64,000 nucleotides of DNA from Botryllus schlosseri (taxonomy: Eukaryota): the NCBI GenBank assembly GCA_051294905.1, contig CM119371.1:5208001-5272000 (forward strand), written 5' to 3'. This document shows, piece by piece, positions 1 through 58,833 of this stretch. A program made the translations under genes and the position numbers. Below the pieces are notes generated by a model. It saw only the letters and a list, made by a program, of their open reading frames with translations. It was not told where the DNA came from and did not search any database. Numbering within the stretch: the stretch's first letter is position 1; every line of letters begins with the position of its first letter.

Positions 1-1770
1 AGGGTTGAACTAGATGCCAGACCTTTCGAATGTCGACCTAATGTATCAGAGTTGTCTGTGACTCCAAAATCCGATATCGGTCAATCAATCAATCAGGTGT
101 ATTAATATTTTCACTGTTTCAAAACATCACAAGACTGCGATACAATGAAAAGATAGTGGGGTGTCGAATAAACTTGGAGTAGCCTTTAAGATCAGACACC
201 CATCTTAACCTAGGCGAAGTAAATAAGAGGCATGCACACTGAAAGAAAAGTACTGCAGAGAATATAAGTCGCAAGCGACAAAACGATGCATGAAAGATAC
301 TCCCAACCTTGCTAAGATGTAGGTTTGGGTAAAATCGAGTACCTGCGTGATTTGAAGCCGAATGTATTGTTAGATTTCAGTATCGTATTCGAGTAGCATG
401 TACCATTAACTTATTATCAGCTGTAATAACTTAAAAAGGTAACATAGGTATTGTTTGTGGCCCCAAGGAAAATGCCAGATACACTTCATGCAAAATAATT
501 TCGTATTTTTAAAGCATGACGGTGCGAGTTGATCTTTGAGAGAGATATTTATGCTGAGATATGACTAATGGCGGTTTCGGGAATCCAACAGCAAAAGTGA
601 AGTATTTAAACTGTTTTTTGTTGTTAATATATTACGCTTGTTGCTTAGGGTAGTTGACGATGCCTGATAATCACGCTGTGGATTGGGAAGCGTATATGAT
701 GTATGACTTCGAATTTCAAGAATCCTATTAATTCACAGTCTAACCAATTATATGAAGTTCAATGAACTCACCACAAAGGTGATGCTATTGTCGACTAATT
801 GTATCAATTTTATCTTGTTATATTTTACAGGTGCTGCTAATACATGACACAGACACTAGTTGGTGACAAGTCAGAGGCGACCATCATATTGCAGTAACAA
901 ATCACCAGACGGTATATGACAGAGTTGGATGCTCAGCTTAAGAATTTGATTAATACCAATTCATCGCAGTAATCCGCTATCATTTATCACCATTGGTGAG
1001 TCTTTGTTTAATCTAGGATGTTTTCATTCCGGACAGACTTCCTCTTTGAATCGTAGGGTATTTCTACGAATCAGAGATTTGATCTCTTGAAATCCAAATT
1101 TGGTATTAGCTCAAATCAATTCATGAGTGGCGCGGCGACTCCGAAGCAGACTTGGACAACTTGAAAATTTCAACTTTTTCAGAATTATATTAGAATAAGA
1201 ATTGCAGTGAAACATTTTTTAAAATTAGACTGTAATTAGAATGATATCTTCATAGTTTTTATTTTCAAACTTGATAAAAATCAGTATTAGAGCTACACAG
1301 TTTTTCTCCAAATTAGATTATAATTAGAATTACTGGAATTGCGAAAATTTGACATTTAATCAAGTTCATTTCGTATCAATTCATAGTTCGTTCTTATAGG
1401 CATGAGAATGCAAATATCTGTGACAGCTAGATTTGCTTTGCACGGTACAGTTCTCCTGTAGTATTTTCAGGAAATCCAGAAATTAAATTACAATGAGAGC
1501 ATACAAACATTTCACAAATTAGATTATAATTTTCTAGTTACCCAAGTCAGCTCCGATTAAAATATCAAACATTTCCTGTTCCAATCCAGTTTGTAAAATG
1601 ACATTGACGCAATTCTGACCGATAACCAGGAATCCAAAATTATTCTGAACCAGTGATGATCTTAAAATTCACAAGGAAATGTTTACATTCAAAGTTATTG
1701 CGAATTCGGTGTCCATGTCGTGTTGAGTAGATACATCACAACTGTTACTGGTGTGTGACTTCACCTAAAG

Positions 1771-4131
1771 CAGCGGTTCTCAACCGGGGGTCCGCGAAGG
1801 ATTTTCAGGGGGTCCGCGAAGCCTCCGAATTTGAAACATGATAGTTAAGCTAATTTGATATTTCTAAGCGAAGTTAGAAAATATCTATATATGTATTTGC
1901 TTTATGACAGCTAAAACGTTAGGGCGCACGTCTGCAGAATGATGTTTGTGATAGAATATCATGCCATGCAAACTCATTTCAACTGTCTGGAAGCGATTAA
2001 GGTCTATGGAAGGGCCTAAATTGTCGCGTCACAGAGGGCGGAAACTGTTTACGTGCTAACGGTGTCGACGTAATAGTATATTAGCCCAACAAGCATAGCT
2101 CATGATTGTTGGCAACGTTAGCAAAGAGACGTATTCGGTATGACCAAATCCAGAAAGTACTCAGAAAGCTATCTCAAAATGGGGTTTACCTCATTGATAG
2201 ATGAAGACAAAGAAAAGCCACAATGAATGTCATGCTGTCCTCAGCAATGAAGCAATGAAGCCATCAAAGCTGGAGCGTCACTTGAAGCAAAAACATCCGG
2301 AGTACATCAAAAAAGACTTGTCATTCTTTCAAACACAAGAACTATCTTTGAAGCGGCAAAAACTTGATGCTAGTGGATATTTTCATCAACAAACCACCGC
2401 ATGTGTTGAGGCGTCATTTGAAGTGGCGTTGATCATCGCTCAGCAGAAAAAGCCTCATACGATAGGTGAAACGATTGTTAAACCCTGTGCTATGAAAATG
2501 GCAAATCGCGTATTGGGCAAAAATAGCGCAGACAAAATCAATCAGGTGTCGTTGTCTAATGACACAATTAAGAGGCGCATTTCGATTATGTCAGGTGATG
2601 TCAAAAGCCAAGTAATCGATGAGATCAAAGCTTCCCCCATGTTTTCTATACAAGTTGATGAATCAACTGATGTGGCATCATGCTCTCAGCTTTTAGTTTT
2701 CGTTCGATACTTGCACATGGAAGACGTTAAAGAGGAATTTTAGTTTTGTAATGCTTTGGAAACAACAACGACGGCGCAAGATGTGATGAACAGCATTTCA
2801 AAGTTCTTTGAAGCTGAAGGATTGCAGTGGGAGAAGCTATGTGGTGTATGTACGGATGGAGCACCTGCGATGCTTGGATCCAAATCAGGTTTCCAAATGA
2901 AAGTAAAAGCCAAGTCTCCCCAAGTCAAAGGAGTACATTGCATGATACATCGGTACACCCTTGCTTGTAAGACTCTTCCATTTTTTTTGAAGAAAGTTCT
3001 TGATTCTGTCGTGAAAGTTGTCAATTTTATCAAAAAGAGCGCAACAACTTCCCGCCTATTTAAACAACTGTGCAAAGAAATGGACTCTAACCACCAGACA
3101 CTTTTATTTCACACTTCAGTACGGTGGCTCTCGAAAGGGAATGTAGTCAATCGCGTCTATGAGCTTCGAACCGAGATAAAATGGTTCTTAGAGGTGATGA
3201 ACAAAGATACTGTCAGCAACTACTTCGGCGAAGAAGCATGGTTACAGGGTCTGGCATATTTGGCTGACATAACTGAGCAGTTGAATAAGTTCAATTTGAG
3301 ACTCCAAGGACATGATACAAACATATTGCTGTTTAGAGATGTTTTGTTGGGGTTTGTAGAAAAGATCAAACTTTGGAATAGGAAAGTCAATCAGGGTAAC
3401 TTCGCAATGTTCGAAAAACTTTCTGAATTTGAAGCTGTTCATCTCAGTGCACAGATCAAGCAGGATATTAGTGAACATTTGCAGTCGCTTGAAAAAGAAT
3501 TCATGAAGTATTTTCCTGATTTATCCCAAGGAGCTGAAATCTTTCCCCGGAACCCATTTTCTCCTTTGATAGACATAACCACTATTCCAGAGGAGCTTCA
3601 AGATGAACTGCTGGATTTAAGGGCTGACTCGGCTGGTCGTGATATGTTCATTGAAAAATCACTTTCTCAATTTTGGTGCCTTATGTTACGATCATACCCA
3701 AAGGTATCGTCTGAAGCTTTACGTGTTATCGTTCCGTTTGCCTCCACCTATCTTTGCGAAAGCGGATTTTCTGCTCTTGTGCATATCAAATCGAAGGCGA
3801 GGAATCAATTAAACGTCGAAGATGATATGCGATTAGCGCTGTCCAAGACAATATCACGCATTGCAAGACTTTCTGATGATATGCAGCATCAAAAATCCCA
3901 TTAAGTCAATATGCTTTAAAACAATAAACATTTTCTACAAGCTCTATGTTATTTTTCACTTGAGAAAAGCGCAAAGATTGCAGTTAAAAGTAGCCTACAG
4001 TTAGTGTTTGCACAAGACAAACAACGTTCGCTTGATTATTGAGCAAAATTTGAACTAAAACTTCAGGGGGTCCGCGGGAGTCTGGCATTACCAAAAGGGG
4101 TCCGCGAAGGCAAAAAGGTTGAGAACCACTG
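1771..4131 (+). mobile_element. hAT DNA transposon, Buster/Charlie-type, near full length, inserted in a PLK intron
   Basis: 15-bp TIRs CAGCGGTTCTCAACC / rc CAGTGGTTCTCAACC; perfect 8-bp TSD ACCTAAAG at 1763-1770 and 4132-4139 (NNNTANNN); GGGGTCCGCG subterminal repeats; encodes a transposase. Confidence 0.97.
2140..3904 (+). pseudogene. hAT (ZBED8/SCAND3/Buster-like) transposase, disrupted
   Basis: ATG at 2140 (MTKSRKYSESYLKMGF), BED-type finger CHAVLSNEAMKPSKLERHL, DDE motifs QVDESTD / CTDGAPAM / YLCESGFS, CMIH and RWLS. Frameshift near 2225 and a single TAG at 2741-2743 (EEF*FC, expected EEFLFC). Confidence 0.95.
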
Positions 4132-5429
4132 ACCTAAAGGATTCTTAGCCCTGGCCGACTTGTAAATTTCCGTATTTCAAAACTCTTTTTAATTCAACTG
4201 ATGAGACACAAGACCCAGCCGATTAGCAAATGGGTGGATTTAACGGATAAAGCAGGATTTGGTCTGGAAATCTTGGTATCAGATTTGTACAAATTACAGG
4301 ATTTTAAAATTAGAGCTAGAACTACACACTTTCAAAACTCACAACTAGATCTCAAACTGCTCACTTCAAAATCTGAAGCTAGAACTTACTTTGCAAAATC
4401 TTCATCTATAACTAGAATAGCTCATTTTTTAAAAGCTAAACTAGAAGTGGAGCTGCTCACTTTTCCAATCTGCAACTGCATTGCTGACTTGACAAAACTT
4501 GCAACTAGAGAAGGGGTTTTTACACCACAGAAGCATTATGAGAAGAGCGTCTGTTTCTGCGTCAGGTCTGTTTGAGAAATTAGGGGTTTGATGGAAGTTT
4601 GTCATATTCTTCCCGCAAGACGTATATTGATATTGTCGAATTGAACGTACATCGAATTATTCACCTGACTCTAATATTGAGACGGAGTGGTAGTTATAGT
4701 GTCATAATGTAGCCTACAAGTCGAAAATGGGAGTGGGAGTAGCTCACTGTTGCCGCAACTAGAACTAGTCACTTTTCAAAACTAGCAACCATAACTGGAA
4801 CTACTCGCTTTTCAATACTTACAACTACAACTACTCTCTCTTCAATTCTGGCTATAACAACTAGAAAATCAGAACTCGGAAATGCAGCAGTTAGTTTACC
4901 GTTGACCAACTGGTAGTTTGTAAAAATTTGCTTGAAATGTTTGTTTGTGCTCCAAAATATTGTATGAATTTTGATTGATTCACTTCATATTTCAGGCTAC
5001 CCACGATGTGAAAACGGCGACGAAGCACTTTTCAACGATAGCACGCGAATGCTTCTGTGCGCCAACAGAGACGTGACAGAGTCCTACTACACACTCCAGC
5101 AATACCTGAGCACTCTAACCAAGAGAGTACATGTCCGAGCAATTGATCAAGGTGAGTCAAATAATCTTGTTGCAATTTTAATGTAAAACAACAAGTAATG
5201 ATTCTATACTTATACACTATATCAATGAGAGGCGGTCAGTAAAGAAGTGCTTCCACTTTGTCGGTGTATTCAAGTACAAGAAACGGTTTAAAAACATGAC
5301 AAATCTACTTCAAGTACCTGTCAGCGTTGTAGAAGTAGAAGTAACAACATGGGTTTCTACTCGATTACATGTGAAAGTAGGGGTTTAAGACACGCTAAAT
5401 CTAATTCAAGTAGCAGTTAACGTTGCTAC

Positions 5430-5794
5430 CAGGTTGTAATGACTTGAGTCCAAGACGGCCACGACAGCCATTTCATTGTCAATTTGAAGGATAGTAAAGG
5501 TACCACATGATTGGTATTTCGTCTATCAGTCCTGATACTTGGAAAATAGGGCCAGAAACTGTTAGGACTGGGGAAAATTATGATATTATAAATGCGGGCC
5601 ATTCTATGTCACTCGAGCCGAGTTGAAAAAGTGAGTTGAACCGAATTGAGCTGAAAACTGAACAGTAAACACAATGACTTGGATTCGGACTTTACTCGGT
5701 GGTGAATTGAAAATGACTCGACTTGACTCGAATCAAAACTATAAAAGGGAGTTTGACTTGTGACTCGGAACCTTGTCGCTTGGTTACAACCCTG
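5430..5794. mobile_element. Non-autonomous hAT MITE (CAGGGTTG TIR, GACTCGAGTC-rich family)
   Basis: Ends CAGG(G)TTGTAATGAC ... CTTGGTTACAACCCTG; perfect TSD GTTGCTAC at 5422-5429 and 5795-5802; same family at 52744-54574, 45695 and 34639. Confidence 0.85.
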
Positions 5795-8529
5795 GTTGCT
5801 ACTCAAGTAGAAGTAGTGATTTGAAAGTATGTAGAATGTAGGTTATCTAAGCCTAGTTTGGCAGACAAAACTGAAAAGGCAAACTAGAAGTATTCAAGTG
5901 CAAGTGGGAAAATATACTTCCTTACTGAGCAGCTAGCACTAGGGTTGTTCAAGACTATCTTTTTTCAGGATTCCGGGATTCACTTAGGGAATTGTTGTGT
6001 CGCCTAAAAATCGACACCATACTTGGCTCGATCCCAACTGGCAGATGTGAACGCACACGAGTTTAGAAATTTCGAATTCAATATGAATAAAATTGAATGA
6101 AAATTCAGATATTACTGTCCACCCACGAAATTGTTACATTGTCTAAAAGAACGATGCTTGCCCATTTTTACACACCTCCAACAGGTAGAAGCGGAGTGAT
6201 TGCACTTGAAAATGATGGATTCGCTAAAATATCCTGTCTACTTGTACCAAATTTAACTTTACTACTTGTAGTTCAATGACAGTAAGGTTAGTAGGTTACC
6301 TCTACTTGAGTAGCATCGGTAATTACTTTGACCACCTTCTAGTTCAGCTTGCAATTTGATGTAAATTTATGAAGTTACTTCTACTTGACTTGCAAATTTG
6401 ATTACTTTGATCACTTGTGCGAGGGCTTTAATATATGCTATTCTATCATACAGGACAGCAGGAACTCACCAAAGTGATTCCGTGTCCTCTGATGGAAGCC
6501 GTGACTTACATCGACTACCAAAATAACTTCACACCTACAAAAGTTTTGGCGCTGGCTTGCGATACACAGATTTTATGTTTGAAAGACTCATTTTTGAAGA
6601 CTCTACTTCAGAAGATGAATCTTGATACGCTCAATACAACGAGCAATACATCTGTATCTATTTTCTACATATTTAATCATCTAAGCTTTCAATTCACTCT
6701 GTTTGAGCTTGGAGGGAATAAATGAATGAATCCATAATAGGAATGTATTGTTTGTTTCCATATTCCAACTCTTGTAAACCGAGCTGATAGTATTTATCGA
6801 ATTAGATGTGTCGGATTGAATTTCTGCAATAGGCTTTTTTCGGCGTTACAGTTTTGATGCGTGCAGGGGTGGTCAAAAGTAGTCTAATCTTTTTACTCGA
6901 TTTGCAGTAGAAGTCAAAGTCACGAGGTAAATTTCCGCTAAATCACGAGTAGACTTAGCGATTGTGGAGACATTTCAAAACTACTAGCCACTAGCGGGAG
7001 CAGATCATGAGAGACCTGAAAAGTACTCCAGTAATTACTGTATATTGAAAAAGTTGATTTGGCTGAGGTGTACTACAAGCAGTTAATCTCAGGAGTCTAT
7101 TTTCAAATGACGACATTAGGGATAGTTTCAATATTTGAAAGATATTCCGTTACCGTGATACAGGTATTTTGTCCAGTTTACATGACAATTTCACTCGTAA
7201 AAGGGATACAAACTTATCCTAAATCATGTTATATTTTACAAAATACAAAGTGTAACTAGTGTTGCTGAAAAAACTTTTGAGTAGCCCAGTAGTGAAAAGA
7301 CCTAGCCAGTAGAGTAAGTCAGATTGAGAACGCCGAAAAGTAAAAGTAGGCTGCTTTGCTACTGACAAGCTCTGAAGATGTAGGGGTGGCTGTTGGAAAA
7401 AGATTAAGAAAGTGTAATTTGTTGAGACAAAGTCTCCATTCACCCATGCTGTCTATGCCGCCGTTAGAAGGTGCCAATGGTCGACAGCTAGTGTCATGTT
7501 TCTGATGTATTCTGGGATTTTTGAGTTGCCTGAGAGACAATTTGGCAATTAAAATGAGATTGCGCATTAGGATATTTCATCTCAGACGGCCATTATGTCG
7601 ATGTGAGTCATGAAGTTGTAAGAGTAATAAAGCGAAACTGTCTTGTAATAATCAATCATTTTGCAAGTGTAGAGGCTTCGCGGACCCGCGGTTGAGAACC
7701 GCTGAACTAGGTTCTTTCTAAGCAGTTAATGGGTGTGACGGAGGTGTGTCTGTCTCTGCAGCCAGTGCCGGGCTGCCGGCTGGCAAAATCGATATGCGGC
7801 ACTTCCGAAAGCGCGCGTGTAGTAATAACATTAGCGCAGATACTGTTGCAGACATATTGAATATTATGGTCGGGCTCTTCCAGATAACTTAGGGTGGTAT
7901 GTTTTACATTACGATAATAATGCCATGTAGCATTCAAGCTGTCAGGATTCCAGAATCTCGTCTATGAAATTTGTATGTTGTAACGACTCTTGCCTTACAC
8001 TGATAGCTAATTGGTTGAGTTCCCCCCCGACCTAAGATTGTGTTTCAGGCACGCCTGGAGAAAGAGCAAGCTTATACAAACCACCAATCCAGTTAGTTAC
8101 CGTTTAACTAGTTGCTGTTTATTTGAGTAGTTCTAGTTGTCCTGTATGTAATTGGTGTCCTGGTCACACAATTCTTTATTTTTTTAGTTTTAATAAATCA
8201 CTGTAACTTGGAGAATCATCGCGACTCACCTAGGCAAAACCTACCGAGATTTCAGTAGGGCTAGTTGTAGTTGCGCATTTTAAAAAGTGATAAGTTCTAT
8301 TTGTGCATTTCTAAGCTTGGTCACAAAATCCTAGTTCTTGACAGCATTGAAATAATATAAATGTGCAGTTGTTGTCGGTCAAGTAACATTTCGTGGGTCT
8401 AGTCTACTTTCTTATCCATAACAACATGACCATCACCAATCAGAGTTCCCCCATGAACATATCTGAATTTATGGCGTTTATAATTGAATTAGGGTTGGGG
8501 TATCAATGTAACGTAGGAACATTCTGTTG

Positions 8530-8900: not shown

Positions 8901-9663
8901 TTATAAACACAATAAATTTGGCAACATTGTCATAGAATGAATATCCAGTGAAATCTTCAAAATATCATATATGATACAAACTGATTATATGTTGTGACAT
9001 ACAGTTTGTATTCTAGTAGCCTACTCGTACCCGTACCATCTTCTGCTGGATCATTTTTTGAATTTGTTTTTGTATTTTCTCAATGACGCAGTGTACGGTG
9101 TGATAAAATCTTGCAGTTTAGTCCTGCCATCTTTTGTAGCAAGTGCTGGGATCGATTCAATACCTTCGAGTCCTTTCCTGTAGATAACAACACGACTGTC
9201 ACCAATCGGTGTTCCCCACGAACATGTCGAAATTTATGGCTTTTATAATTGGTTCAGGGCAGACTTCAACTTTGAGCTGTTCTATTTTAGCTTAGCATCA
9301 GAATTATTGTGACATTATACATTGTTTTCAAATCTCATTGATGAAGTATTCCCCATTATATTGATAGTTTTGTCTGTTGTTCTCCATTCTGTTATGATAA
9401 TTGCTCTGTCTACAATCTTGTAATGCTGCTTGTTTAAAATAGTTCTACACTTCATGCATTGCAGATGTAGCCATACTATAATTGAACCAAGTTTATATGC
9501 TGAAATACCAAAGATCTGTGGCTGTGGGTCTTTTCTCTAGTGTCATAAAGAAAAGCATTCTGTGGATCCAGTATTAACTATTGGTCACGACTTGACATAA
9601 CGCCAATTCGATATACCGGTATATTGGAAAGCCTTTACTGGAAATAGTAACCTCAAGCTTCAT

Positions 9664-10545
9664 TTGGATATGCACGCTGGCATCAGAAATGTTGAATGTG
9701 ATGTATGTGGTAAACTCACTCGGAAGGATACCATCAAGCGTCATATGAATATGCATACCGGCATCAAAAATCATGACTGTGATATCTGTGGGAAAGTTTT
9801 CACTGAGAAGGGTACCCTCAAGCATCATATGGATGTACATGCTGGGATAAAAAATCATATGTGTGAAATATGTGGTAATGCATTTACTCAGAAGGGTACC
9901 CTCAAGTTGCATATGGATATGCATACTGGCATCAAAAATCATGTTTGTGATATCTGTGGGAAAGCATTCACTGAGAAGGGTACCCTCAAGCATCATATGG
10001 ATGTACATGCTGGAATCAAAAATCATACATGTGCTATATGTGGTAAAACATTCTCTCAGAGGGGTCACCTCAAGCTTCATATGAATATGCATGCTGGAAG
10101 CAGAAATCATGCATGTGCTATATGTGGTAAAACATTCACTCAGAGGGGTGACCTCAAGCTTCATTTGGTTATGCATGCTGGCATTAAAAAGCATGTTTGT
10201 GATATCTGTGGGAAAGCATTCACTACGAATGGTCACCTCAAGCTTCATGTGGATATGCATGCAGGAAGCAGAAATCATACATGTGCTATATGTGGTAAAG
10301 CATTCACTCAGAAGGGTAACCTCAAGCTTCATATGGATAGGCATGCTGGGAGCAAAAATCATACATGTGCTATATGTGGTAAAGCATTCACTCAGAAGGG
10401 TAACCTCAAGCGTCATATGGATAGGCATGCTGGGAGCAAAAATCATACATGTGCTATATGTGGTAAAGCATTCACTCAGAAGGGTACCCTCAAGCTTCAT
10501 ATGGATAGGCATGCTGGGAGCAAAAGTCATACATGTGCTATATGA
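9664..10545 (+). CDS. C2H2 zinc-finger array, 10 intact fingers (5' part of the gene not found; upstream frame has stops)
   Basis: C-x2-C-x3-F-x5-L-x2-H-x3-H repeats with HTG/HAG linkers; second-Cys codons at 9706, 9787, 9871 ... 10459 (84-bp period; first interval 81 bp); ORF ends at TGA 10543. Confidence 0.85.
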   Translation: MDMHAGIRNVECDVCGKLTRKDTIKRHMNMHTGIKNHDCDICGKVFTEKGTLKHHMDVHAGIKNHMCEICGNAFTQKGTLKLHMDMHTGIKNHVCDICGKAFTEKGTLKHHMDVHAGIKNHTCAICGKTFSQRGHLKLHMNMHAGSRNHACAICGKTFTQRGDLKLHLVMHAGIKKHVCDICGKAFTTNGHLKLHVDMHAGSRNHTCAICGKAFTQKGNLKLHMDRHAGSKNHTCAICGKAFTQKGNLKRHMDRHAGSKNHTCAICGKAFTQKGTLKLHMDRHAGSKSHTCAI

Positions 10546-11406
10546 GGTAAAGCACTCACTCGGAAGGGTACCCTCACGCTTCATATGGATAGGCATGCTG
10601 GGAGCAAACATCATACATGTGCTATATGTGGTAAAGCATTCACTCAGAAGGGTACCCTCAAGCTTCATATGGATAGGCATGCTGGGAGCAAAAATCATAC
10701 ATGTGCTATATGAGGTAAAGCATTCACTCGGAAGGGTACCCTCAAGCTTCATATGGATAGGCATGCTGGGAGCAAAAATCATACATGTGCTATATGTGGT
10801 AAAGCATTCACTCAGAAGGGTACCCTCAAGCTTCATATGGATAGGCATGCTGGGAGCAAAAGTCATACATGTGCTATATGAGGTAAAGCACTCACTCGGA
10901 AGGGTACCCTCAAGCTTCATATGGATAGGCATGCTGGGAGCAAAAATCATACATGTGCTATATGAGGTAAAGCATTCACTCGGAAGGGTACCCTCAAGCT
11001 TCATATGGATAGGCATGCTGGGAGCAAAAATCATACATGTGCTATATGTGGTAAAGCATTCACTCAGAAGGGTACCCTCAAGCTTCATATGGATAGGCAT
11101 GCTGGGAGCAAAAATCATACATGTGCTATATGAGGTAAAGCATTCACTCGGAAGGGTACCCTCAAGCTTCATATGGATAGGCATGCTGGGAGCAAAAATC
11201 ATACATGTGCTATATGTGGTAAAGCATTCACTCAGAAGGGTACCCTCAAGCTTCATATGGATAGGCATGCTGGGAGCAAAAATCATACATGTGCTATATG
11301 AGGTAAAGCATTCACTCGGAAGGGTACCCTCAAGCAAAATATGGCTATGCATGCTGGCACCAAGATTCATATTGTGATATACGGTACCGTAATTTCTCAT
11401 GTATAA
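10546..11406 (+). repeat. Homogenised 84-bp zinc-finger minisatellite, 10 further fingers, 6 with in-frame TGA
   Basis: Second-Cys codon is TGA at 10543, 10711, 10879, 10963, 11131, 11299 and TGT at 10627, 10795, 11047, 11215; frame closes with TAA at 11404-11406. Confidence 0.95.
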
Positions 11407-12121
11407 TACGCCCCGCGAGACTTGCGACATGGTAATCCTTCTTCATACTGGCAAAAAAAATCATAAATGTCAAGCTTTCTGAAACCGCCAACATCAAGCA
11501 CGTGGATTGAAGTGTCGAGTTCTAAAGTCACGCAAGGTCTTGATCAAGTAATTCGAGCCGTGCATGATGCAGCCACTTTAGAATTGTTTCACTGCTAGCA
11601 GTGTCAAGTGATTGCCCTTGAGAGCGAACGTATCACTACATTTCTCTGGCTTTCATACTGTATGAGCCAACATATTTTCCATGTACACTTTATGATAGTC
11701 ATGCAACATATTGTATTAACACTGGGCAATACAAAAGCGACAAGTATTGTTCTACATTTTTTGAGTATTGATGTACATTTGTTGACAAGCGTTTACATTT
11801 CTTCAATATCCTTGTGATCGGTTTTCGTTTGTGTGATGATCTTGCAGCCATTACTAGCTAGTAATTGCTTAGTTAGTCCTGAATAGTGGTAGTTCTGTCT
11901 GTCTGATTCTTCAGTCATTTTGTACCGATGGTCATGTGGATAGCCAATCTGATTCCTATAAAATATAATGATTGGGCTGCTTCGGAATCAAATCTGGTAG
12001 TTGTGTTTCGTTTGTTATTGATTTTCAAATGTCATTAGTGATTTAGTTGTGCAGTTTAAACATTCAGTAGTTTGTATAAGTCTGGTGCCAGCTTGTTTAT
12101 GTACGATATTTCATTTTGCAG

Positions 12122-16485: not shown

Positions 16486-17066
16486 TCTGATGGAAGTTCA
16501 CAAACTAAGGCACGTCATCACAAAACCTGAGACTCGTTATTACATGCAACAGATTCTGCTTGGAGTCGTTTATCTTCACGATTGTAATATCATTCAAATG
16601 GATATCAAGGTAAGATTGGTGGCTGTGATACCGGACATGTTCTAACTATTGGGTTTATTGAAATGTGCTACTAGTATTAGAACTGGACTTAGTCACTTTT
16701 CAGAATTTTCAACTAGAACTTCAACTAACGATCATTAAGAATCCACAACTAACTAGTTAATAAACACACGAATTACTGAATTGCAATCAACTGAGAAATA
16801 ACAACATCACACAACAGAAAAAAAGGTACCACGATTCACATGAAAGGTGTTTTCTAGTTGTCCGACAACTAAACTTTTGAAATCCGCAACTAGAACTACT
16901 AAAAAAAGCAGTGGTTTGTTTTCCATCAACTAACTAGATTGGTAATTTGTAAAAGTCTGGATGCTTGAATATCTAAATGTGGAATTTGCATTGACAGGTG
17001 TAGAATCGATTCTTTAACAACAACATGAAGATGAAGATTGGAAATCCGGTCGATGGGTTGTGTTTT
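16486..17066 (+). pseudogene. PLK1: PLK1-like exon 3 (16486-16609) and internally deleted exon 4 (16998-17066)
   Basis: LMEVHKLRHVITKPETRYYMQQILLGVVYLHDCNIIQMDIK|gtaag; NNNMKMKIGNP...MGCV|gtgagt. Confidence 0.9.
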
Positions 17067-17831: not shown

Positions 17832-17942
17832 AAAATATCAAGAGATCATCTCCATCGCAATTTGAATCGCAAGCACGTTGGATTTCGTGGATTCTTCAAA
17901 GTCGAGGATTTTATCGACAACGCTCTCGGGTTGTGCAAAAGC
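17832..17942 (+). pseudogene. PLK1: PLK1-like exon 2 fragment
   Basis: HRNLNRKHVGFRGFFKVEDFIDNALGLCK; DNA clearly homologous to the other exon-2 copies. Confidence 0.8.
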
Positions 17943-47378: not shown

Positions 47379-48514
47379 TATGTCGATGCATCGATGGAAA
47401 GTGGCCATCAGTCAATGATCTATGGAAATTTCGATAGTGACCTCCTCGCTCATTTCGTTGATATTCGGCGTTCCAGGTCGCTCTACAGCAGTGGTTTCCA
47501 ACCTTTTTCGGTGGCAGGGCCAAATTTAGAATTTCAGAGTACGGCCGGGGCCGCACGAATACCAAGGCAATGTAAGGAACCCAAAATAGTGGCCAAAATA
47601 TGAAAATTGGCATTGTTCCGATCATTCGCTTGACGCCATTGGTCATTGTGTTGCCGCGTTCCCGATGTTCAGAACAATCAACCTTTGCTGGCTATTTCGG
47701 AGTAGTTTTATTGCCGATTCGTATTTTTGGAATCAGTGCGACACTTGCTTTCGATGAACACCGACATATCAAATTATTCGGACGCTTGGTTCGCGAGCTA
47801 TAGGACTACCAATTATGCTGCTTTTTGCAGGCTAAGCAGTACGCATCTCGGCGTATTCAATCGTGAGTCACTTGTTATACATCTATCCGTAAATTAGTTA
47901 TCAATACCCAGGACCGTAGCAGCACTTCGTCAGCACCCCCAAAAAACGTTTCCCTTGGGCCCCCCCTCCCATAGGGTGATAAACAGAACTTCGAAGCCCC
48001 CAGACCCCCTCAGGCTAGATGGCTGTTTACCGCTATTTATCATCTAAATCGGGTGTTCGTTTTAGGCAGCTTCTCTTGACTAATCGCGCGAAGCGCGAAA
48101 AACTTCTGTAATTCATGATTGAATCGGTCAATATAATCGGGAATTGCATATATATTGGTATCAATTCTGATCCTCTCTCTGCTCACGTAATCAGATTGAC
48201 TGGTTGAGCAGAGTGAGTTGTGTTTGATAAGGTAGGACCACTCAATAATAATTAAACATCTTCGGGCGTATACCCGTTGGCAAGAACGAAACAGCACTTC
48301 GTCAGGCCCCCCAAAACACTTAGGTCTTGAGCTCCCATAGGGTGATAAACCGATCCCCTGTGCCGTTATTCGCTTCTGCCACGAAATCAGGATCCCCGTT
48401 CCCCGTTTGCATTCGCAACACAGCTTGACTCGAGTCAAGTCGAGTTACGCGATTTTTGAAAGCAAGCTCAGTCACTCGATATTTGAATGTGACTCAGTCA
48501 CAGACAGAACATAC

Positions 48515-48640
48515 CTTTTGATAAGATCGCAAGCTGCAGGCGATGTATTTTGCGGAATATCGTATTCGCTCTTTTCAATATTCGAGGTTTCCTGCAACGT
48601 CTGGCCTTCAGACGGCATCTTACCGACCAACAATGTATAC
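48515..48640 (-). pseudogene. PLK1: PLK1-like exon 5
   Basis: ccctag|YTLLVGKMPSEGQTLQETSNIEKSEYDIPQNTSPAACDLIKR|gtatgt versus PLK [43 protein letters not shown]. Confidence 0.9.
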
Positions 48641-50284
48641 CTAGGGTAAAGAAAAACAGGCATCAACTTACCAAGAGGGATTTTTCGACAACTAGCTAAT
48701 TCTAGTTGTCTAACTAGACTAATTAGAACAAAATGTCGGTCACCTAATTCTAATCTAATTAACGAAATATTTCTATGCTCTTATTTCAATTCTAACGTTA
48801 TATTTGGTTTTGCTGTAAATGCTACAGTAGAGCTTTAACTACGGAACAAGCCAAGGTTGGCGTATAGACGTTTTCTATTCTCATCATTAGAATGAACTCT
48901 GATTAGATATCAACTTGATTATTGTCCAAGTCATCGCGAATTCAGCAATTCTAATCTAATTAAGAAAAAAAACTTTATTCAAGCAATCATTCTAATTCTA
49001 ATATAATTCAGAAAAGTTGAAAATTTATCAATGAGGATCATAGTTTTGATAATTTCCACAGAGGTAGGCCGTACACCTTGATTGGTCATATCGCATACGT
49101 CTTGATCGACCCACAGCATTGTCACAAAGTGTAACGGAACAGGTATGGCAGAAATGCAATAAACTTATCCCAAATGTGATGTAGAAGTGGCAATATATTC
49201 TTTGTGATCTCGTGAAAGGTACATGGTTGAACTTTCAAAATCATCCGTGTCACGGCGTTATAATAATGATACTCGAATATTTGAAGCCTAATCGTCGATC
49301 CAGTATCAAATCAATCAGGCGATCGATCTTGCCCAGCCCTACACCTAAGACCTTGTTAGTCATACTTACATAACACAACCCAGTGTCAAGCTGTCATGCT
49401 GTTCACTTCAAAAATGTGCCCCTGTTTTCTCAGAACTTCCGGGGCAATATAATTGGGTATGCCACAAAAAGTATTCTTTGCTTGTCTGTCACAGTCGACC
49501 TTGGTAGTTGGCCGAGATTTCCGATATTTACTGTGTGATATTGTTTAGGAACCAGTTATCCAGCTGTCAATGCAAATTATTATGTTTAATATGTATAGCC
49601 CACAGCAGACTTGTACAAACTACCAATTTAGTTTGTTGATAGCAAACTTACTGTTTTTTAGTACAAGTTTTTGTTCTACTCTTGTTAAAAAGAGATTAGT
49701 TCTAGTTGTACATGTAAAAATATTTGGTTACCGATCAACATGTGTCTCCGTTTGTCGTGAATCATGACACCGGTGTTAGGTTTTGTGATGTTCTGGCAGT
49801 CATTGCTAGCTCAGAGTCATCGGTACTAATAGTGGCGTGGCCAGGGGTCGAAACCCCTCTCATTTCAAACTATAAATTTGTCCCCAACATTTCTTAGCTC
49901 ATTTTCAATCAAGTAATTTGTATACATTAGTAATTATACATTCTTTATGTTTAAATCGGTTGCAAGACTTTAAAGGTCATTAGTTCTAGTGTTAGCTGTT
50001 ACAAGTTTTGAAAAGTGAGTGGTTCTCGTTACGAGTTCTCAAAAACGATGGATTCTAGCTCTATTTTTGGTTCTAGTTGCGAATTCTGAAGAGAGTCGTT
50101 CTATTTTCAGTTCTAGTTGCTCGTTTTGAAGCATCAGTAGTTCTAGTTTTAGCAGCGGGTTTATAAAAGTGAGTTATTCTAGTTGTAGTTGCGAATTTTA
50201 AAAAGTGAGTAGTTCTAGTTCCAGTACGCATTTGAAAAGTATCCGGTAGTTTACACTAGTCCGATACCCTACAACCAAACTTAC

Positions 50285-50409
50285 TTTGATATCCGTGTGA
50301 ATGATGTTACAATCCTGGAGATAAACAGCTTCAGCAAAATCAGTTGCACATAATAACGAGTCTCTGGTCCCATGATGACGCGCCGTCTTTAGTAAACTTC
50401 CATCAGCAA
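50285..50409 (-). pseudogene. PLK1: PLK1-like exon 3
   Basis: cgtcag|LLMEVY*RRRVIMGPETRYYVQLILL..VYLQDCNIIHTDIK|gtaagt. Confidence 0.9.
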
Positions 50410-51455
50410 CTGACGAGAAAAAGCCAAGATAATTGGATTGATAAATCGAAAACAACAATATCATTTGTTAGGAACTTCTAAATCAGTGGTTCTCAACCTG
50501 TTTGAGCTAGCGGGCTTGTCAAATTCTACAACGAACTTTGAAGACCAATGAACCTTCCAAAAAAGAGACTTCATTTCGTGCTGCCTTTGGATATTATAGT
50601 TTTTAAACATATGGCTTGGCAAAATTGAATACCTTATTGTGAGTCGAGTATGCGACTTCGAGTTAAGTATTCAAGTATGACTCGTTTTGATGTCACGACA
50701 GTATGGATGATGTGTATTCACTACAGAGAATATAATACAAGATTTACATCATTTCAAGATAATCCGGTATTCCTTCGACCATACCTATTTAATTGCACTT
50801 GACGACATTACCGTGGTTTGATCACGACTTCACCGATATGTCATTTCCGATATTGTGCAATGTGCATGTATGTTTGCACTATATGATCTGTAAGCTGTGA
50901 TAAGACTATTCAAGGTTTATGGCTTTTCACAGTGGACAAAGTATCAAAGCAATCATTTACAGGGATTTCACAATATCGGTCGGATTTGCGTTAATGTTAT
51001 TTTACAAACTGGATTTGCACCGAGAAATTTTGATGTTCTTCAGTGGTCGCCGCAGTCTATTATGGTATAAATCTCTGACTCGCAGAAATAGGCCTACATG
51101 TAAGAAGAAGTCGATTCAAAATGAAATAAATCAGAGATTACATAAATACCAACCTATATTTATAGCAGACTGCAATGTTGGATGAGTATCGATCAATTTC
51201 TCGAGTTGAGCTTCCAATCTTATCATATGAAAGTCCGATGATTCGTTCCGCATATGGTGGCGGCATCTTCCTTGTCACATATGTGCTCATGTGTCTTTAT
51301 ATTAGTAGCACCTGTCAAGTAGAGAAATATTACCATGCCATACTTCTATACCCTGAATTATTCGAGTCGAGCAATGAGAGATGATATTTTCGAGCACCGA
51401 AATTACATGTTCCCTACTACTCGACAAAAATTATAGTTTTGGTAGCACTGTCCAC

Positions 51456-51591: not shown

Positions 51592-52259
51592 CTATCCATT
51601 GTGGCAGCCTAGAAACGTCGATTGAACGTATGCCAGCAAACTGAACATTAGGGCTGTTCAAAAAATACTTTTTTTCCTGAATCTTGCTGGTTACGTGTTT
51701 AAATCGTTAGGTTGCCTTAAAAAACGAGGCACACCAAATTTCAATTCATTCCAACCAATAATCGCTGATTTCGGATGGTTTGACAATTTTGAATTTACCC
51801 AAAGATGCAAAAAAAATTTTTTGTCAAATTTTTCCGTCGACCCCATGAAATTGTTTCGCTGTCTTCAAAGACGATGCAAAACAAATTTGGCTCAATTCCA
51901 ACCGGTAGAAGCGGAACTATTTATGTTTTTCTTCGATAATTCTGGGATTATCCTAGATTGGTGGATAATACAAGAATTATCATCGAAAAACTCAAATAAT
52001 CATTTGGGTGTGGCCGTAAAAATATAAAATCACCTTCAACGTGATGCATATCTAAGAACTGGCATTATATTCTTCGTGGTCGCGCAAGAGATACGTATGT
52101 TATGACGTAACACTGAGTGACACTCGGATGCTCGACTAAAAGCCTAATACTGGATTCAGATTCAAATCACTCAGGTGCTCGAAATTTCCAAGTCCTACAC
52201 CTGAGACCCTCGCGATGCCCTTATAATAAACTTACACATCAATACTCTTATTTACTCAC

Positions 52260-52454
52260 AAAACACAGCCAAACGACCAGGGCTCCACATCGAAACGGTG
52301 CCCATTCTTTCCGAGAACTTCCGGGGCAATATAGTTGGGGGTGCCACAAAAAGGAATTTTTGTTTGGCCGTCGAAGTCGACTTTGGTAGCCAGGATCAAA
52401 TCTCGCCGAGATCTCCAATCTTCACCTCCATCTTGTTCAGGATTAGATTCCAAG
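52260..52454 (-). pseudogene. PLK1: PLK1-like exon 4
   Basis: gacag|LG(fs)[14 protein letters not shown]...[44 protein letters not shown]|gtgagt. Confidence 0.93.
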
Positions 52455-52853
52455 CTGTCAATACAAATTTCATATTCAAATACACAGGTATACAAACTTG
52501 TACAAACTACCAATCCAGGTAGTTGATGGTCAACAAACTATTGCCAATTTGAGGAGTTTGGTCTTAGTTATGTAATATGAAAGCAGGTTGTTCTAGTTGC
52601 AGTAGCGGATCTTGAATAGCGAGTGGTTCTACTTCAAGTTTAGCATTTAAAAAAAATGTAGTTGCAGACAACTAGAAAACGTGTGTCATCGTGATACCGT
52701 CGGTCTGTTGCATGATATTTTCGCAGCCTTTGGTAGCTCAGAGCAGGGTTGTAACCAAGTCATAAGTCAATCTCACTTTTAAAGTTTTCACTCGAGTCGA
52801 GTCATTTTCAATTCACCACCGAATCAAGTCAGAGTCCAAATCAGCTATTAGAC

Positions 52854-54213
52854 CAGGGGTTCTCAACCTGGGGGGCGCGGAAGGCTCTCAGGGGGGGGGG
52901 GCGCGAGAAATTGACGAAGTCACTATAGGGGGGCGCGAGAAATTGACAAAGTCAGTATAAATTGTACGTGTCCGAACATGTGTTTCCCATCCATTATGAG
53001 AAGACGATTAATGAAGATGAAATTTATTACATATTCAAGAAAGCTTGCAAAATACAAACTCTAGCAACCGCGCTCAACCGAGTATAGTCTGATTTCAACT
53101 TGATTTGAGCAAATTTTTGAAATTCTTTGGAGATATAGAGAGCAATTCCCACGTGTAAGTCATTCATTGCTTGATAGCTTTGACAGTAGCCTAAAGCTTG
53201 GCGCGCTGGGCAGCTCTTGTTAGTAGCTTGCGAACTGCACTGCCTAAGACAGAATTAGATGCAACATAGGTTGCCCGGTTTCGCCCTCAATTAGGCTATA
53301 AATCAACACAATTTAATTAATTTCCAAAACTGATCAAATTTAGCCTGGCAGGACAGAACGACGCCTTGCGCTCTGTACTCACGACCAGCATCAGGATTAG
53401 TCTCAGGGTGACCTACCTTGAAATTAATTAATGGATGTCTTGTTCAATGTTTTCTGTTATTTTCAAACAAGTTTGGAGAAATTTGTCATGTAAAAGACTC
53501 AACAACTGGAATGCCGATTCAAAATTGGCGTAAGATATACCTTATGTATACTATTAGATCAGGGGTGGGCAGCCTGCGGCCGTAGAAGAGAATTTGAGCG
53601 GCGTTCGACGCCTAATTCAATTAGTAGGCTATATGTTGGCAGCCGTAGACATGCAAATTGCAATTACGAATTCACTCCCGCATTTTCGAGAGATTTTAAT
53701 TAATCTTGAAATTTTCTTCGCCCTCCGCGCAATTCAACAAGACTTCATTTTTTGATTTTAATGCAGTAGCGCCCGTCTTAATCTGAGCCGGAATGAGAAT
53801 TTGTCAAGAAATAACAATTCGTTCGCAGCCCTGAAAAATTTTCGCGCTCCGCGCGACAATATGCACCTCCCGGCAACTATTCATAACATTGCCACTCGCG
53901 ATTTCGCTGTGTACAATAGGCCATTGTGAAAAGTAGAATAGTCCGGAGTTCACCGGGAATGGATATGGACAGTTTACCATAGGAAGTTTGTGTCCAGATC
54001 GTTCATTGCGGCTATGCCCTGGAATGCGGCCTTACGCTACCCCGTACATAAGTAATCGAAATGCGGCCATGATTATCAAAAACGTTGCCCACCTCTGTAT
54101 TAGATGATGTGCTCTTTTTGACATGACGATAAATGCAAGGGGGGTCAGGGGGGGCGCGATTTTTTTGACCATCTCTAAGGGGGGCGCGAGTAAAAAAAGG
54201 TTGAGAACCACTG
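52854..54213. mobile_element. Buster-type non-autonomous hAT, middle layer
   Basis: CAGGGGTTCTCAACC ... GGTTGAGAACCACTG (same TIR family as 1771-4131); TSD TATTAGAC at 52846-52853 and 54214-54221. Confidence 0.93.
53560..54097. mobile_element. Buster-type MITE, inner layer
   Basis: CAGGGGTGGGCAGC ... GTTGCCCACCTCTG; TSD TATTAGAT at 53552-53559 and 54098-54105. Confidence 0.92.
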
Positions 54214-55010
54214 TATTAGACAGTCGAGTCTAAGTCATAGTGTTTTGACTCGAGTCCGAGTCCAAGTCATTATGTTTACTGGTCAGTTATCATTCCAATC
54301 GGTCTCCAACCACTTTTTCTAACACTCCTCGAGTGATATAGAATGGTTGGCATTTATAATATCGTTTTTTTTTTCAGTTTAACAGTTTCTGGTCCTATTT
54401 TCAAGTATCAGGTCTGATATACGAAATACCAATCATGTGGTCACTTACCATTCTTCAAAGGTACAGTGACAGTCCCAGTCTTGAGTCATATGCCTCAAGT
54501 CAGGTTGAGTCACCAAATAAGTGGGACTTGAGTTTGACTCGAGTCGAGTCATAACTTGAGTCATTGCAGCCCTGGCTCAGAGTCATCACGCCAAACAGTG
54601 GCATAGGCAGGGTTGAGTACTGGGGGTCGAAAGCAATCCCGTTTCAAACTCGAAACCCCGTCAATTCGAGATGCCAATCTCCAATATTTCTTAGATCATT
54701 TGTAAGTTGTTGACCGAACAATCATTAATGAGTTGTGTATTAGTTAGTTAGTAGTAGATTCTCAATGGTCGTTAATTCAAGTAGAGAATTAGGAAAAGTG
54801 GGCAATTCTAATTCTTGTGGGGTGTTGAAAATCCAGTAATTTGTACAAGTTCACTTTAGAGAGCTTGTAGCGCCATCAGTCATTTTATGTTAGTGGTACA
54901 TAATGTGCGTAGTTCTATCCCACAAATTGGCGAACCAATCATCGGTCGGCTCTGGTTTTGACATAATTTTCGAAGATTATTAACAAAAGCACAACTGCAT
55001 ACAATGTTAC

Positions 55011-55127
55011 CTTGCTATCTCCGTGAATGATTAGACAATAAACAACATCCAGCAGAATCTGTTGCGGGAGATAAAGGGTCTCTGGTTCTGTGATGCCGTA
55101 TCTCCTTTTGAAAGCTTCCATCAGCGA
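55011..55127 (-). pseudogene. PLK1: PLK1-like exon 3 (open frame, 39 codons)
   Basis: gtcag|SLMEAFKRRYGITEPETLYLPQQILLDVVYCLIIHGDSK|gtaac. Confidence 0.9.
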
Positions 55128-55318
55128 CTGACAACAAAAGTATATGGTAATTGGATTGCTGGAAAGAAAACAATATCATTTGTTGGACACACCTAAATCA
55201 GTGGTTCTCAACCTTCCTGAGTTTGAGGGACCGTCAAATTTGTTTTTGCAGACCGGTGAACCTTCCAAACTATAAACCTCATTTAATACTGGCTTTTTGA
55301 AATCGAACATGTAATAAA

Positions 55319-55792
55319 TAGGGATGGCTAAAACAGAGTGTGTGACTGATTTGATTCTGAATCGAGTAATGAGTTTGAGTCACTCGTTTAAGCAACACCA
55401 CAAAGAATATAATGCTGATCTTAGTCACATTATAAAGATTATGTGGCACTTTTATGACCATACCTATTCCATGACACTTTGTGACAATGCTTTTGGTTGA
55501 TCACGACTACTCGGAAATGCCATTCCAACATACGCGAGTAGCTTTGTACTATATGTTTCGTATGCTGCGATACGACCAATCGAGGTTTACAGCTTTTCAC
55601 AGTGAGAAATATGATCTAAAATATAATTCCTATTGGTTTAGTTCAGCTTATTGTTAATATAATTTTTCCCTTTCGTGGCATGGAGCGTATATTATCGGTA
55701 CTCGAAACAATCATTTACTACTACTCGACTCAAATTATCAGAATTGATACTCGATTCAGATTTGAGTCATCAGATCATTGTGCTCAGCCCTA
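55319..55792. mobile_element. ~480-bp MITE with TAGGG(C/A)TGG(G)C TIRs (representative; about 11 copies, mostly in PLK introns 2 and 4)
   Basis: TAGGGATGGC ... GCTCAGCCCTA; shared interior motifs (TTGTCACAAAGTGCAATG or rc, GATTCAGAATCGAGT or rc) also at 13290, 14945, 15880, 17105, 24140, 29855, 46077, 49020, 50640, 57008. Confidence 0.7.
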
Positions 55793-56153
55793 GAAATCGC
55801 AATGGTGCAACTAGAAAAATATCACATTATCCAAACTAGATTAGAATTTGAATTATAATAAACACATTTTTCGAAATTTGATTGGAATTACAAATACCTT
55901 CTCAGTTGGGAAAAGAAATCAATTTCCTTTCATTTCCAATCGGAGTTGATTATCATAAGCATGAGAACTGTTCAGCAATCTGACTAGTTTCGCACTATAT
56001 GTGTAGAATTAGTTGACTAATTAGATTAGAATTACATTACAAGTACTTTGCTCTATTTAGCCTAATGTACGGTATAGAACAATATTTTTATGGTTGCATT
56101 TTCGATTGGCACAGCTAGAGGTATATTACATTGTACTGACAAAATGCTTTTAC

Positions 56154-56301
56154 CATTCTTTTGCACAACTCGAGAACGATGTAGACAAAATCCCAATCTT
56201 GGAAGAATCCATGAACTCCAACGACGTGCTTGTGATTCAAACTTTGACGAGACTGATCTCTTCACACATTAGTCTTTCTCATGCTACTTCACAAGCAATG
56301 C
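56154..56301 (-). pseudogene. PLK1: PLK1-like exon 2
   Basis: atttcag|[46 protein letters not shown]|gtaaa. Confidence 0.92.
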
Positions 56302-56879
56302 CTGAAATTCAGATACTAGCTTTAGTTGCAGATTTTAAAAAGTGAGTAGTTCTAATTCTAGTTGTGTATGTAAAAATATTTTAGTAGCCGATCAACCAGA
56401 AAACACGTGTCTTCGTTTGTCGTGAATCATGATACCGGTTTTTCGTTGTGTGCTGTTCTTCCAGCCGTCTCAGAGTAAGCACTACTAATAATGGTGAAAA
56501 TGCGGGTCAAAACCTTCTTGAATATTCTGTAAAAGTAGAGGTAGGCTACTATTGCTACTGAGTGACTCTGCTTGGATGCGTTGAGTGAGATGCATCCTTT
56601 CGCGTTCATTTCATACCTAAGTATAGCAAAGTTGTTCAAATAAATGCTCTGAAGGTTTGGAAATATGTCTTAAACTAGTTGCCATATTGTTTCAATATTG
56701 GCTGCATATATCGTGGCTATCGGTGAAGGTGCCACTTATCGGTATTGGCTCGAAAATACGATATCGGTCAGGCTCTAATTATGATGAATGAGACTCGAGT
56801 ACGAGATTCGAAACGTAACACTCGATTCAGAATCAAATCAATCAGGAACTCCATTTGCCAAGACCTACAGAAAACTTAC

Positions 56880-57000
56880 TGTTGAAACTCTGTAGTTTAC
56901 TTTCCAAAATTCTGAGCGATATTGTTGATCCGGTTTTTGGAAGGTTCTGAGAAACGTAGACTGTGAAAGAATGAGCTTTCAAAATATGTGATTCGTAATT
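56880..57000 (-). pseudogene. PLK1: PLK1-like exon 6, 5'-truncated
   Basis: HSFTVYVSQNLPKTGSTISLRILESKLQSFN|gtaag, homologous to 20518-20682. Confidence 0.7.
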
Positions 57001-57970
57001 TGCTGACTAGGTTTGGGCAAAGTCGACTAGGTCTGCCTGAGTGTTCAATTCCGAATCAAGTATTCGATGATAGTCACTATGACGACATATAAATATGCAT
57101 GAATGCTGTGTGAAGTTCAAATATGCACATTTCATGCAATCACAAAGAATATACGATAACACCATCTTTTTGTACTTTGTGCAATGTTGCTGGTTGATAC
57201 GGTAGCCTAACGATTTCACAGATAAGCCTATGTCATTTCCACTCACGCGAGTACCTTACTACACATGTTTAGTATGCTGTGACACGACCAATTGAGGTTT
57301 ACAGATATCCACGATGAGAAATACTATTGAAAGTGTAATTATTTAATTGGTAAATTTACTCTTCGTTCAGTTCAGTTTATTGTTAATCATCTTTTCCTCT
57401 TGTGGCCAGGAGCGTACAAGCACAGTATTCTAAAAAACCATCTCTCATGACTCGAATTATTAGAATCAATACAGATTCAGATTTGAGTACCGTACTCGAA
57501 TAGTTGTGCCAGTTCTAGTGATCAGAGTCGGGCTACTAGAGAAAATATTCAAACTAGATTAGAATTAAAATTATAGCTACACAAGTTATCGAAATTAGAT
57601 CAGAATCACTTAATTCGTAAAACAATGCGGTAAAGATCAAAATCACTTCATACCAAATAAGAGTCCATTCTCATGAACAACAGAATGACTTGCGTCTGTA
57701 CACCGAAGTAGGCTAGTTTCACACTATACAGTTTTCCTGTACAGGTACAGGTACACCATAAATTATACTAGAATTGAAATGACAGCATAAAAGTATTTCT
57801 CAAATTAGAATATTATTAGATTAACGGCATTTGGTTATGATTAGTCTAATTAGACAACTGGTATTATCTAGTTGTCCAAGTGGGCTAGCTAATAAACGCT
57901 ACAAATCTGATGTAATTGCGATCACTACAGTTAGATATACATTACAGTTGTAATGAGGAAATACGCTTGC

Positions 57971-58111
57971 CTGTCTTTTGCACAACTCGAGAACAATGTA
58001 GACGAAATCCTGTTCTTGGAAAAATCCTTGAAATCCAATGTCGTGCTTGTGATTCAAACTGCTATGGCGACCGATCTCTCTCTCTTCCTCGTGCTTATTC
58101 TTGTGAAGTGC
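57971..58111 (-). pseudogene. PLK1: PLK1-like exon 2 (open frame, 47 codons, GC donor)
   Basis: atttcag|[47 protein letters not shown]|gcaag. Confidence 0.9.
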
Positions 58112-58626
58112 CTGAAATTTAGACTTTAACGAATTTTAATCTAATGAGTTGACGGTTGACTGACTACTGTTATTTTGAATAGTTTTAGTTGCACATTTCA
58201 TAAAGTGAGTGGTTCTAGTTGCAGTTGCGAGTTTTGATAAGTGAGTAGTTCCTGTTGGGAAAAGAGACAGAAACAACAAAATTATTTAGCCACTTGAACA
58301 CTATTACACTTGAACTTAGACTTGAGATGAAGAGAGTTACCATTGAAACTAATCAAAATGTAATTCTACATAAGCAGTTGCATACATGGCCCTAGGGGGA
58401 CTGTGTGTTGAAGTAGGAATAGAAGCTGAATTGTAGAATCTGACGACATGACAGGCACAAGAGTGCTCAAGAGATGGTTTGTTTGGTTGTGTTAGACTGG
58501 CTTTGTGAATGACAACATGTAAGCTTCCGATCAAATCCATGGTTTCAACACAGTTAACAAAAGAAGGCATTGATGCATACAACATATATTGGGCACATAG
58601 ATTCCTTGCGTCTGCACTTGACTCAC

Positions 58627-58833
58627 CTTTGGCACAATTATACAAGCGAACACTTCTTTTGTTACGACTTCCGTGATTTCAAAGCATTTCGCAAATCCCT
58701 CTTTGCCAAGAAATGTACCTCTTGTGTATCGTTTTCCAGTACAGTCGTCACACACGACTTTCGGGATCTTTTTAGTACCGGTAGCGATGGTAAACTTTAT
58801 CTTACATTATTGTGAAATCTAGCACAACTCAGC
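58627..58833 (-). pseudogene. PLK1: PLK1-like first kinase exon
   Basis: [49 protein letters not shown]|gtgagt; acceptor ACGATATTTCATTTTGCAG identical to 12103-12121; the only nearby ATG is out of frame. Confidence 0.95.

Follow-up and report, generated by a model that had tools for sequence, protein, structure and literature searches.

Probable old cluster of locally duplicated PLK1 pseudogene fragments in Botryllus schlosseri

How do many exons of polo-like kinase 1 (PLK1) come to lie together on a tunicate chromosome? PLK1 is an essential mitotic kinase and is normally low-copy. The question is raised by 64,000 bases of Botryllus schlosseri DNA (GenBank assembly GCA_051294905.1, contig CM119371.1, positions 5,208,001 to 5,272,000, forward strand), here called the window, with about 39% G+C and no N runs. 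An earlier note, made from the sequence alone, had described at least 26 scrambled PLK exons and read them either as a product of genetic conflict or as neutral amplification. The locus is probably an old cluster of unprocessed PLK1 pseudogene fragments that arose by local duplication and rearrangement and has been broken up by transposons. It most likely has no protein-coding function today.

Kinase-like peptides can be recognized among the translated open reading frames of the window. A PLK1 profile hidden Markov model (HMM) was built from 30+ full-length PLK1 proteins, taken from two database searches, and run against the six-frame translation of the window. It gave 26 domain matches, 22 with an independent E-value (i-E) ≤0.1 and 15 with i-E ≤1e-3. 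Locally shuffled windows (n=10) gave 0–2 matches each, none with i-E ≤0.1. Searches by tblastn with single PLK1 proteins found places identical to the profile matches, and comparison of the window DNA with itself showed that weak protein matches are homologous to stronger copies. DNA homologies include 18634–18998 with 29265–29639 (E 9e-65, 74% identity) and 13824–14229 with 33740–34116 (E 4e-62, 73% identity). Profile, tblastn and DNA homology together bear out the earlier count.

The pieces were compared with the PDB using phmmer. The exon 4 piece at 52259–52423 (−) matched human and zebrafish PLK1 kinase domains at 6e-17, PLK3 at 2e-9, PLK2 at 7e-8 and PLK4 at 3e-7. Exon 1 matched PLK1 at 3e-14 and PLK2 at 4e-11, and exon 3 matched PLK1 at 1e-8 and PLK3 at 4e-7. 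PLK1 was the top PDB match of the polo-box 2 exon (3e-4), and PLK1 polo-box chains were the sole matches of the polo-box query. N-lobe, C-helix region, catalytic loop, activation segment and both polo boxes all match PLK1 best, and the consensus of the window exons is that of a normal PLK1 kinase domain, e.g. IIHRDIK followed by LENLFLN across the exon border. Among kinases, other PLKs included, PLK1 is the closest to the kinase pieces by sequence, and the pieces are PLK1-type by descent. The C-terminal polo-box domain is also present, though degenerate, as collinear polo-box 1 and 2 exons. Unlike PLK1/Polo, no window copy is complete or intact, stops and frameshifts occur throughout, and the catalytic Lys, HRD arginine and DFG aspartate are altered in individual copies.

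The exon copies are located as follows.

12209 (+), 58621 (−): exon 1, two copies
12784, 17817, 18710, 23932, 29335 (all +), 56157, 57953 (both −): exon 2, seven copies
14029, 16481, 33850 (all +), 50282, 55008 (both −): exon 3, five copies
14720, 16998 (truncated), 34389 (all +), 49368, 52259 (both −): exon 4, five copies
48472–48639 (−): exon 5, one copy
15679 (+), 63225 (−): exon 6, two solid copies
913, 4222, 4995, 6459 (all +): linker/polo-box exons, four, collinear

The earlier counts held for exons 1, 2, 3 and 5 and for the linker/polo-box set. Exon 4 has five copies instead of the four counted before, and exon 6 has two solid copies instead of three. A third exon 6 candidate at 20545–20655 (+) is doubtful, with a marginal protein match and no DNA homology in the exon. 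The solid copies are supported by DNA homology between 63281–63479 and 15600–15802 (67.6%, E 3e-12). A polo-box-like match at 38844 failed confirmation at the DNA level. The cluster, previously placed at 831–58833, is real and extends beyond that right end, with an exon 6 copy at 63.2–63.4 kb. As the earlier note had stated, there is no complete PLK1 gene within the window, and no unit holds all exons.

When everything was mapped onto unit A (12.1–15.9 kb), the exon copies grouped into about eight partial units.

913–6617 (+), unit Z: linker exon 913–969, polo-box 1 exons 4222–4272 and 4995–5151, polo-box 2 exon 6459–6617
12094–15950 (+), unit A: exon 1 12209–12271, exon 2 12784–12911, exon 3 14029–14133, exon 4 14720–14899, exon 6 15679–15816; exon 5 missing
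16237–18998 (+), units E/F: exon 3 16481–16654, truncated exon 4 16998–17144, exon 2 copies 17817–17942 and 18710–18842
20633–24608 (+), unit G: intron 1-type sequence 20633–21257, exon 2 23932–24027, intron 2-type sequence 24022–24595
28839–34637 (+), unit B: part of intron 1, exon 2 29335–29483, intron 2 29416–30397, a 3.3-kb insertion, exon 3 33850–33970, exon 4 34389–34574
48472–50588 (−), unit D: exon 3 50282–50424, exon 4 49368–49508, and the only exon 5 of the window
52122–58861 (−), unit C: exon 1 58621–58785, exon 2 57953–58099, a second exon 2 56157–56255, exon 3 55008–55130, exon 4 52259–52402
63225–63590 (−), unit H: exon 6 copy with an in-frame stop, found by tblastn/HMM and DNA homology; probably part of a unit that continues past the window edge

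No + strand copy occurs beyond 39 kb and no − strand copy before 48 kb, and exon order inside units is mostly collinear. The exons of unit Z are collinear with PLK1 residues ~373–590, in the order and orientation of one gene tail. Partial tandem copies thus make up two convergent arms, a layout unlike random scrambling. The word "scrambled" in the earlier note fits only in part, given the strict orientation by arm and the mostly collinear order.

Exon families were aligned with 250-bp flanks. The exon 1–4 families have common polypyrimidine-AG acceptors, GT donors and homologous intron sequence, as the earlier note had described for the intron flanks. Because introns and splice sites are common to the copies, they derive from genomic DNA and are not retrocopies of mRNA. 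The copies retain parental introns and splice sites, as expected of unprocessed pseudogenes. Units A and B are sisters in trees and have collinear exon-intron blocks of up to about 2.2 kb in common at 73–79% identity. These include 12844–13825 with 29416–30397 in intron 2 (78.7% over 1,002 bp) and 14685–14962 with 34358–34637 (79%). Homology also crosses the arms. The region 16335–16720 in units E/F matches 50560–50181 in unit D at 75.6%, and in both trees and self-comparison the exon 3 copy at 16481 (+) is closest to that at 50282 (−). Such sister relationships across the arms indicate that inverted duplication took part.

The introns of the PLK units also hold a 0.3–0.5 kb repeat: intron 2 has it in one orientation, intron 4 in the opposite one, and further copies occur in many other places.

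13293–13819: repeat copy
14987–15318: repeat copy, inverted
24319–24608, 30139–30388, 46102–46579, 49099–49235, 55457–55593, 57230–57347: further repeat copies

This repeat is probably a small mobile element older than the amplification, and it may have mediated inversions. Minisatellites of 36–41 bp are common in the unit introns. Together, the intronic repeats and minisatellites are plausible substrates for the rearrangements.

The repeat also bears on a rival to segmental duplication, in which a transposon (Pack-type Harbinger/MULE, Helitron or similar) picked up the exon copies and dispersed them. The region is rich in transposons, and the ~0.5 kb at 46102–46579, homologous to PLK intron 2 at 13293–13819, lies inside a candidate Harbinger-like element (43373–47378). 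However, this sequence carries no exon, matches the repeat seen inverted in intron 4 and in many other places, and looks like a mobile element resident in introns. Capture would also have to account for long collinear exon-intron-exon blocks with differing end points and no fixed cargo or termini, and for the confinement of all copies to one cluster with arm-wise orientation. Judged by block end points, sequence content and orientation, capture by a transposon is a very unlikely origin of the copies.

Several further repeats were observed in the same sequence. A 36-bp motif, AACTAGAACTACTCACTTTTCAAAA..., recurs across many introns. A tandem array at 28333–28730 is a 41/83-bp satellite with about 10 copies of the 41-bp unit and is related to PLK intron 2 sequence. 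Another tandem array, at 25584–26255, has a 126/251-bp unit.

Transposons also interrupt the units. A hAT-like element and a degenerate copy of it were found.

2201–3904 (+): pair of hAT-type transposase-like open reading frames (ORFs), 180 aa with a weak DUF4371 match followed by 382 aa, in an intron of polo-box unit Z
35986–36604: degenerate copy of the hAT-like element

The hAT-like element is much better preserved than the surrounding PLK exons and is therefore younger.

Decay is visible in nearly every exon. Exon 1 of unit A has lost its 3′ part by deletion. In the only complete exon 1, that of unit C, the frame is open, the catalytic Lys is replaced by Ile, and GKGGFA is changed to GKEGFA (PDB alignment). 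Six of the seven exon 2 copies are damaged, whether by a stop, truncation, frameshifting indels or loss of the acceptor or donor site. In unit A there is a 16-nt deletion and a TAG stop, the acceptor is lost at 17817, the 3′ part is lost at 23932, the donor in unit B is mutated to CT, and the second exon 2 of unit C (56157) has a TAG stop. The one open copy, at 57953, has an in-frame deletion of 9 nt and GC as its donor. Indels or a stop disrupt three of the five exon 3 copies, with indels in unit A, a 20-nt deletion in unit B and a stop in unit D; the copies at 16481 and 55008 are open, the latter with a 9-nt deletion, but lack the HRD arginine. Indels are present in units E/F.

The activation-segment exon is disrupted in four of five copies, that at 14720 being the sole fully open one. 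The copy at 16998 lacks the middle of the exon, and those at 34389 and 49368 have 1-nt deletions, the latter with a frameshift, an 8-nt insertion and a stop. In exon 4 of unit C, 1 nt is missing and an insertion after the DFG position breaks the 5′ part. Both solid exon 6 copies, in units A and H, contain stops. In unit Z, the exon at 4995–5151 keeps its AG/GT borders but is short of ~7 codons, with a frame change at about 5122; the linker exon is met by a stop directly after 969.

Unit C is the least decayed unit. Mutually exclusive or tandem exon usage in this unit was considered and ruled out because its second exon 2 and its exon 4 are broken. No unit in the window has a full reading frame over all exons, with stops or frameshifts in most copies, and the catalytic set of VAIK Lys, HRD and DFG Asp is not found in the window copies.

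Could the copies descend from a pseudokinase? The HRD motif reads QMD at 16481 (units E/F), HTD in two copies including that of unit D, HGD in unit C (where DLK is also DSK), and HRC in the fifth copy, which keeps the arginine, lacks the aspartate and has a 2-nt insertion. The family consensus is HRDIK. Four of five copies have lost the arginine, through three different codons, and ACG (Thr) occurs in two non-sister copies; a shared pseudokinase ancestor is thus not indicated by the HRD motif. The DFG aspartate is Asn in four of five exon 4 copies (NFG in unit A, NLG twice including unit B, and N with the rest deleted); the fifth has D-L followed by the insertion. This pattern suggests that the change from aspartate to asparagine preceded the duplications that gave at least four of the five exon 4 copies, and on DFG a pseudokinase ancestor is possible.

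The copies are 61–86% identical to each other and each has private indels, in line with the strong divergence claimed earlier. Haplotig or collapse copies would be near-identical, so haplotig duplication and assembly collapse are ruled out. Duplicated or mis-joined contigs that give apparent copies are hardly credible as an explanation: nothing specific was found in their favor beyond the general risk of repeat-rich regions, and no N run interrupts the window.

Exon-family trees are star-like, with short internal and long terminal branches of 0.13–0.65 substitutions per site. No pair of copies exceeds 86% identity and terminal branches are long, so amplification stopped long ago; the spread of divergences from 61% to 86% implies more than one duplication event. 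The lineage-specific, long-running expansion proposed earlier thus stands as a local PLK1-derived expansion by repeated duplication. It is not continuing, with no young copy and an end long ago.

Did the copies diverge under selection? Pairwise differences at the three codon positions are 0.28/0.24/0.30. The ratio of nonsynonymous to synonymous differences (pN/pS), from uncorrected Nei-Gojobori estimates with bootstrap intervals, is 0.79 for exon 2 and 0.80 for exon 3, and both intervals include 1. In the youngest unit pair, A/B, the intron 2 block is at least as similar as the exons (71–76%). The codon-position values and the ratios of exons 2 and 3 fit the neutral amplification that had been offered as an alternative.

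Several observations weigh against purely neutral decay. The pN/pS ratio is 0.49 (bootstrap 0.35–0.67) for exon 4 and 0.68 (0.54–0.87) when pooled. Exons are 72% alike and flanks 61% in the multiple alignments, where the flank alignments are poorer. Unit C has three consecutive open exons. The ratios mean either that part of the divergence was under constraint or that the uncorrected estimate is biased. The earlier note had named dN/dS near 1 everywhere as the mark of an ordinary pseudogene graveyard; the disabled copies and their substitution pattern come close to this, and exon 4 departs from it. As read from these substitutions, neutral decay would have prevailed for most of the history, together with a modest signal of constraint that is strongest in the activation-segment exon. 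This signal could come from once-functional copies, from a constrained parent gene that seeded the cluster repeatedly, or from bias of the method.

The first of these sources belongs to a broader alternative. The fragments could be the wreck of a lineage-specific PLK1 paralogue family that was amplified under selection, for dosage or in genetic conflict, was functional for part of its history, and is now dead here; intact, perhaps germline-expressed members may survive elsewhere. Its members were possibly catalytically dead pseudokinases or polo-box decoys. The low pooled and exon 4 ratios, the shared DFG asparagine and the open exons of unit C speak for such a family, as does a precedent in another tunicate lineage. 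In Oikopleura, two papers describe duplicated mitotic kinases, with CDK1 paralogues and two Auroras, the paralogues being expressed or diversified (PMC8832800, PMC10733467). The two cases share a tunicate lineage that duplicates core cell-cycle kinases and differ in that the window copies are dead fragments. Against the family, no intact copy is found in 64 kb, exons 2 and 3 are indistinguishable from neutral, the HRD consensus and the arginine losses through different codons give no sign of a common pseudokinase ancestor, and a common asparagine is equally expected from amplification of a dead gene. A once-functional family is therefore judged unlikely. If it were true, the expansion would parallel the CDK1 and Aurora duplications, and if intact, expressed members of the clade exist, a core mitotic kinase would have expanded in an ascidian-type lineage.

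The genetic-conflict reading had been drawn by analogy with Smok/Tcr of the mouse t-haplotype. Members of that family are expressed, have open reading frames and lie within a defined drive haplotype. The likeness is limited to the local multiplication of a Ser/Thr kinase gene; unlike Smok/Tcr, the window has no intact ORF. Intact copies, as expected of a conflict-driven ampliconic family, are absent from the 64-kb window, substitutions are near-neutral and almost every copy is disabled, leaving this reading without support.

Searches for relatives gave no parent gene. An exhaustive search of a representative protein set with the exon 4 piece returned generic PLK1s alone, at ≤71% identity. A word-indexed search with a full-length octocoral PLK1 (P0081) gave PLK1s from cnidarians and vertebrates; tunicates were not among them. 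The 93-aa ORF around exon 4 matched two unrelated fragments only in the protein collection, one of them part of a compact PLK gene from a metagenome contig, and exact look-up of ten window ORFs in that collection found none. Literature searches gave no report of PLK pseudogene clusters in tunicates and returned only the Oikopleura papers on CDK1 and Aurora duplication. Separately, two public proteins from other organisms (P0063 and P0099) contain 6–8 identical tandem copies of a kinase activation-segment peptide and look like gene-model or assembly artefacts.

The cluster of unprocessed pseudogene fragments probably formed as follows, the order of events being inferred. It started with a genomic copy of one PLK1-type gene, or of an already inactive paralogue. 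Several rounds of local duplication, tandem and inverted, gave rise to the two convergent arms with their roughly eight partial units. Each copy then decayed independently by point mutations, small indels, larger deletions and insertions of transposons and minisatellites.

The locus resembles other unprocessed pseudogene clusters and fragmentary segmental duplications in its retained introns and splice sites, local tandem and inverted copies, partial exon sets, apparently near-neutral decay and units interrupted by transposons. It differs in the mild signal of past constraint in exon 4 and in its extent, since about 26 exons in about eight units over 64 kb are unusual for a low-copy kinase. 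It is an object of ordinary kind, yet an unusually rich example for an essential mitotic kinase. Annotation of the region calls for caution: gene predictors could join the pseudo-exons into chimeric "PLK1-like" models, and the fragments would inflate analyses of PLK1 copy number and orthology in this tunicate. For work on the reshaping of a tunicate chromosome by segmental duplication and intronic repeats, the locus offers a useful series of local duplications and inversions.

Pfam scans of 20 other ORFs in the window found C2H2 zinc fingers, weak DUF4371 (hAT-type) and weak zf-RVT matches, and nothing else. Retroelement remains at 59370–62108 (−) include a 238-aa ORF with the weak zf-RVT (non-LTR reverse transcriptase) match; neighboring ORFs of 130–153 aa have no Pfam match. 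A minisatellite at 9574–11430 repeats an 84-bp unit 20.6 times (89% matches), and each unit encodes one C2H2 zinc finger. It contains a 293-aa zinc-finger ORF on the + strand and a 618-aa antisense ORF on the − strand.

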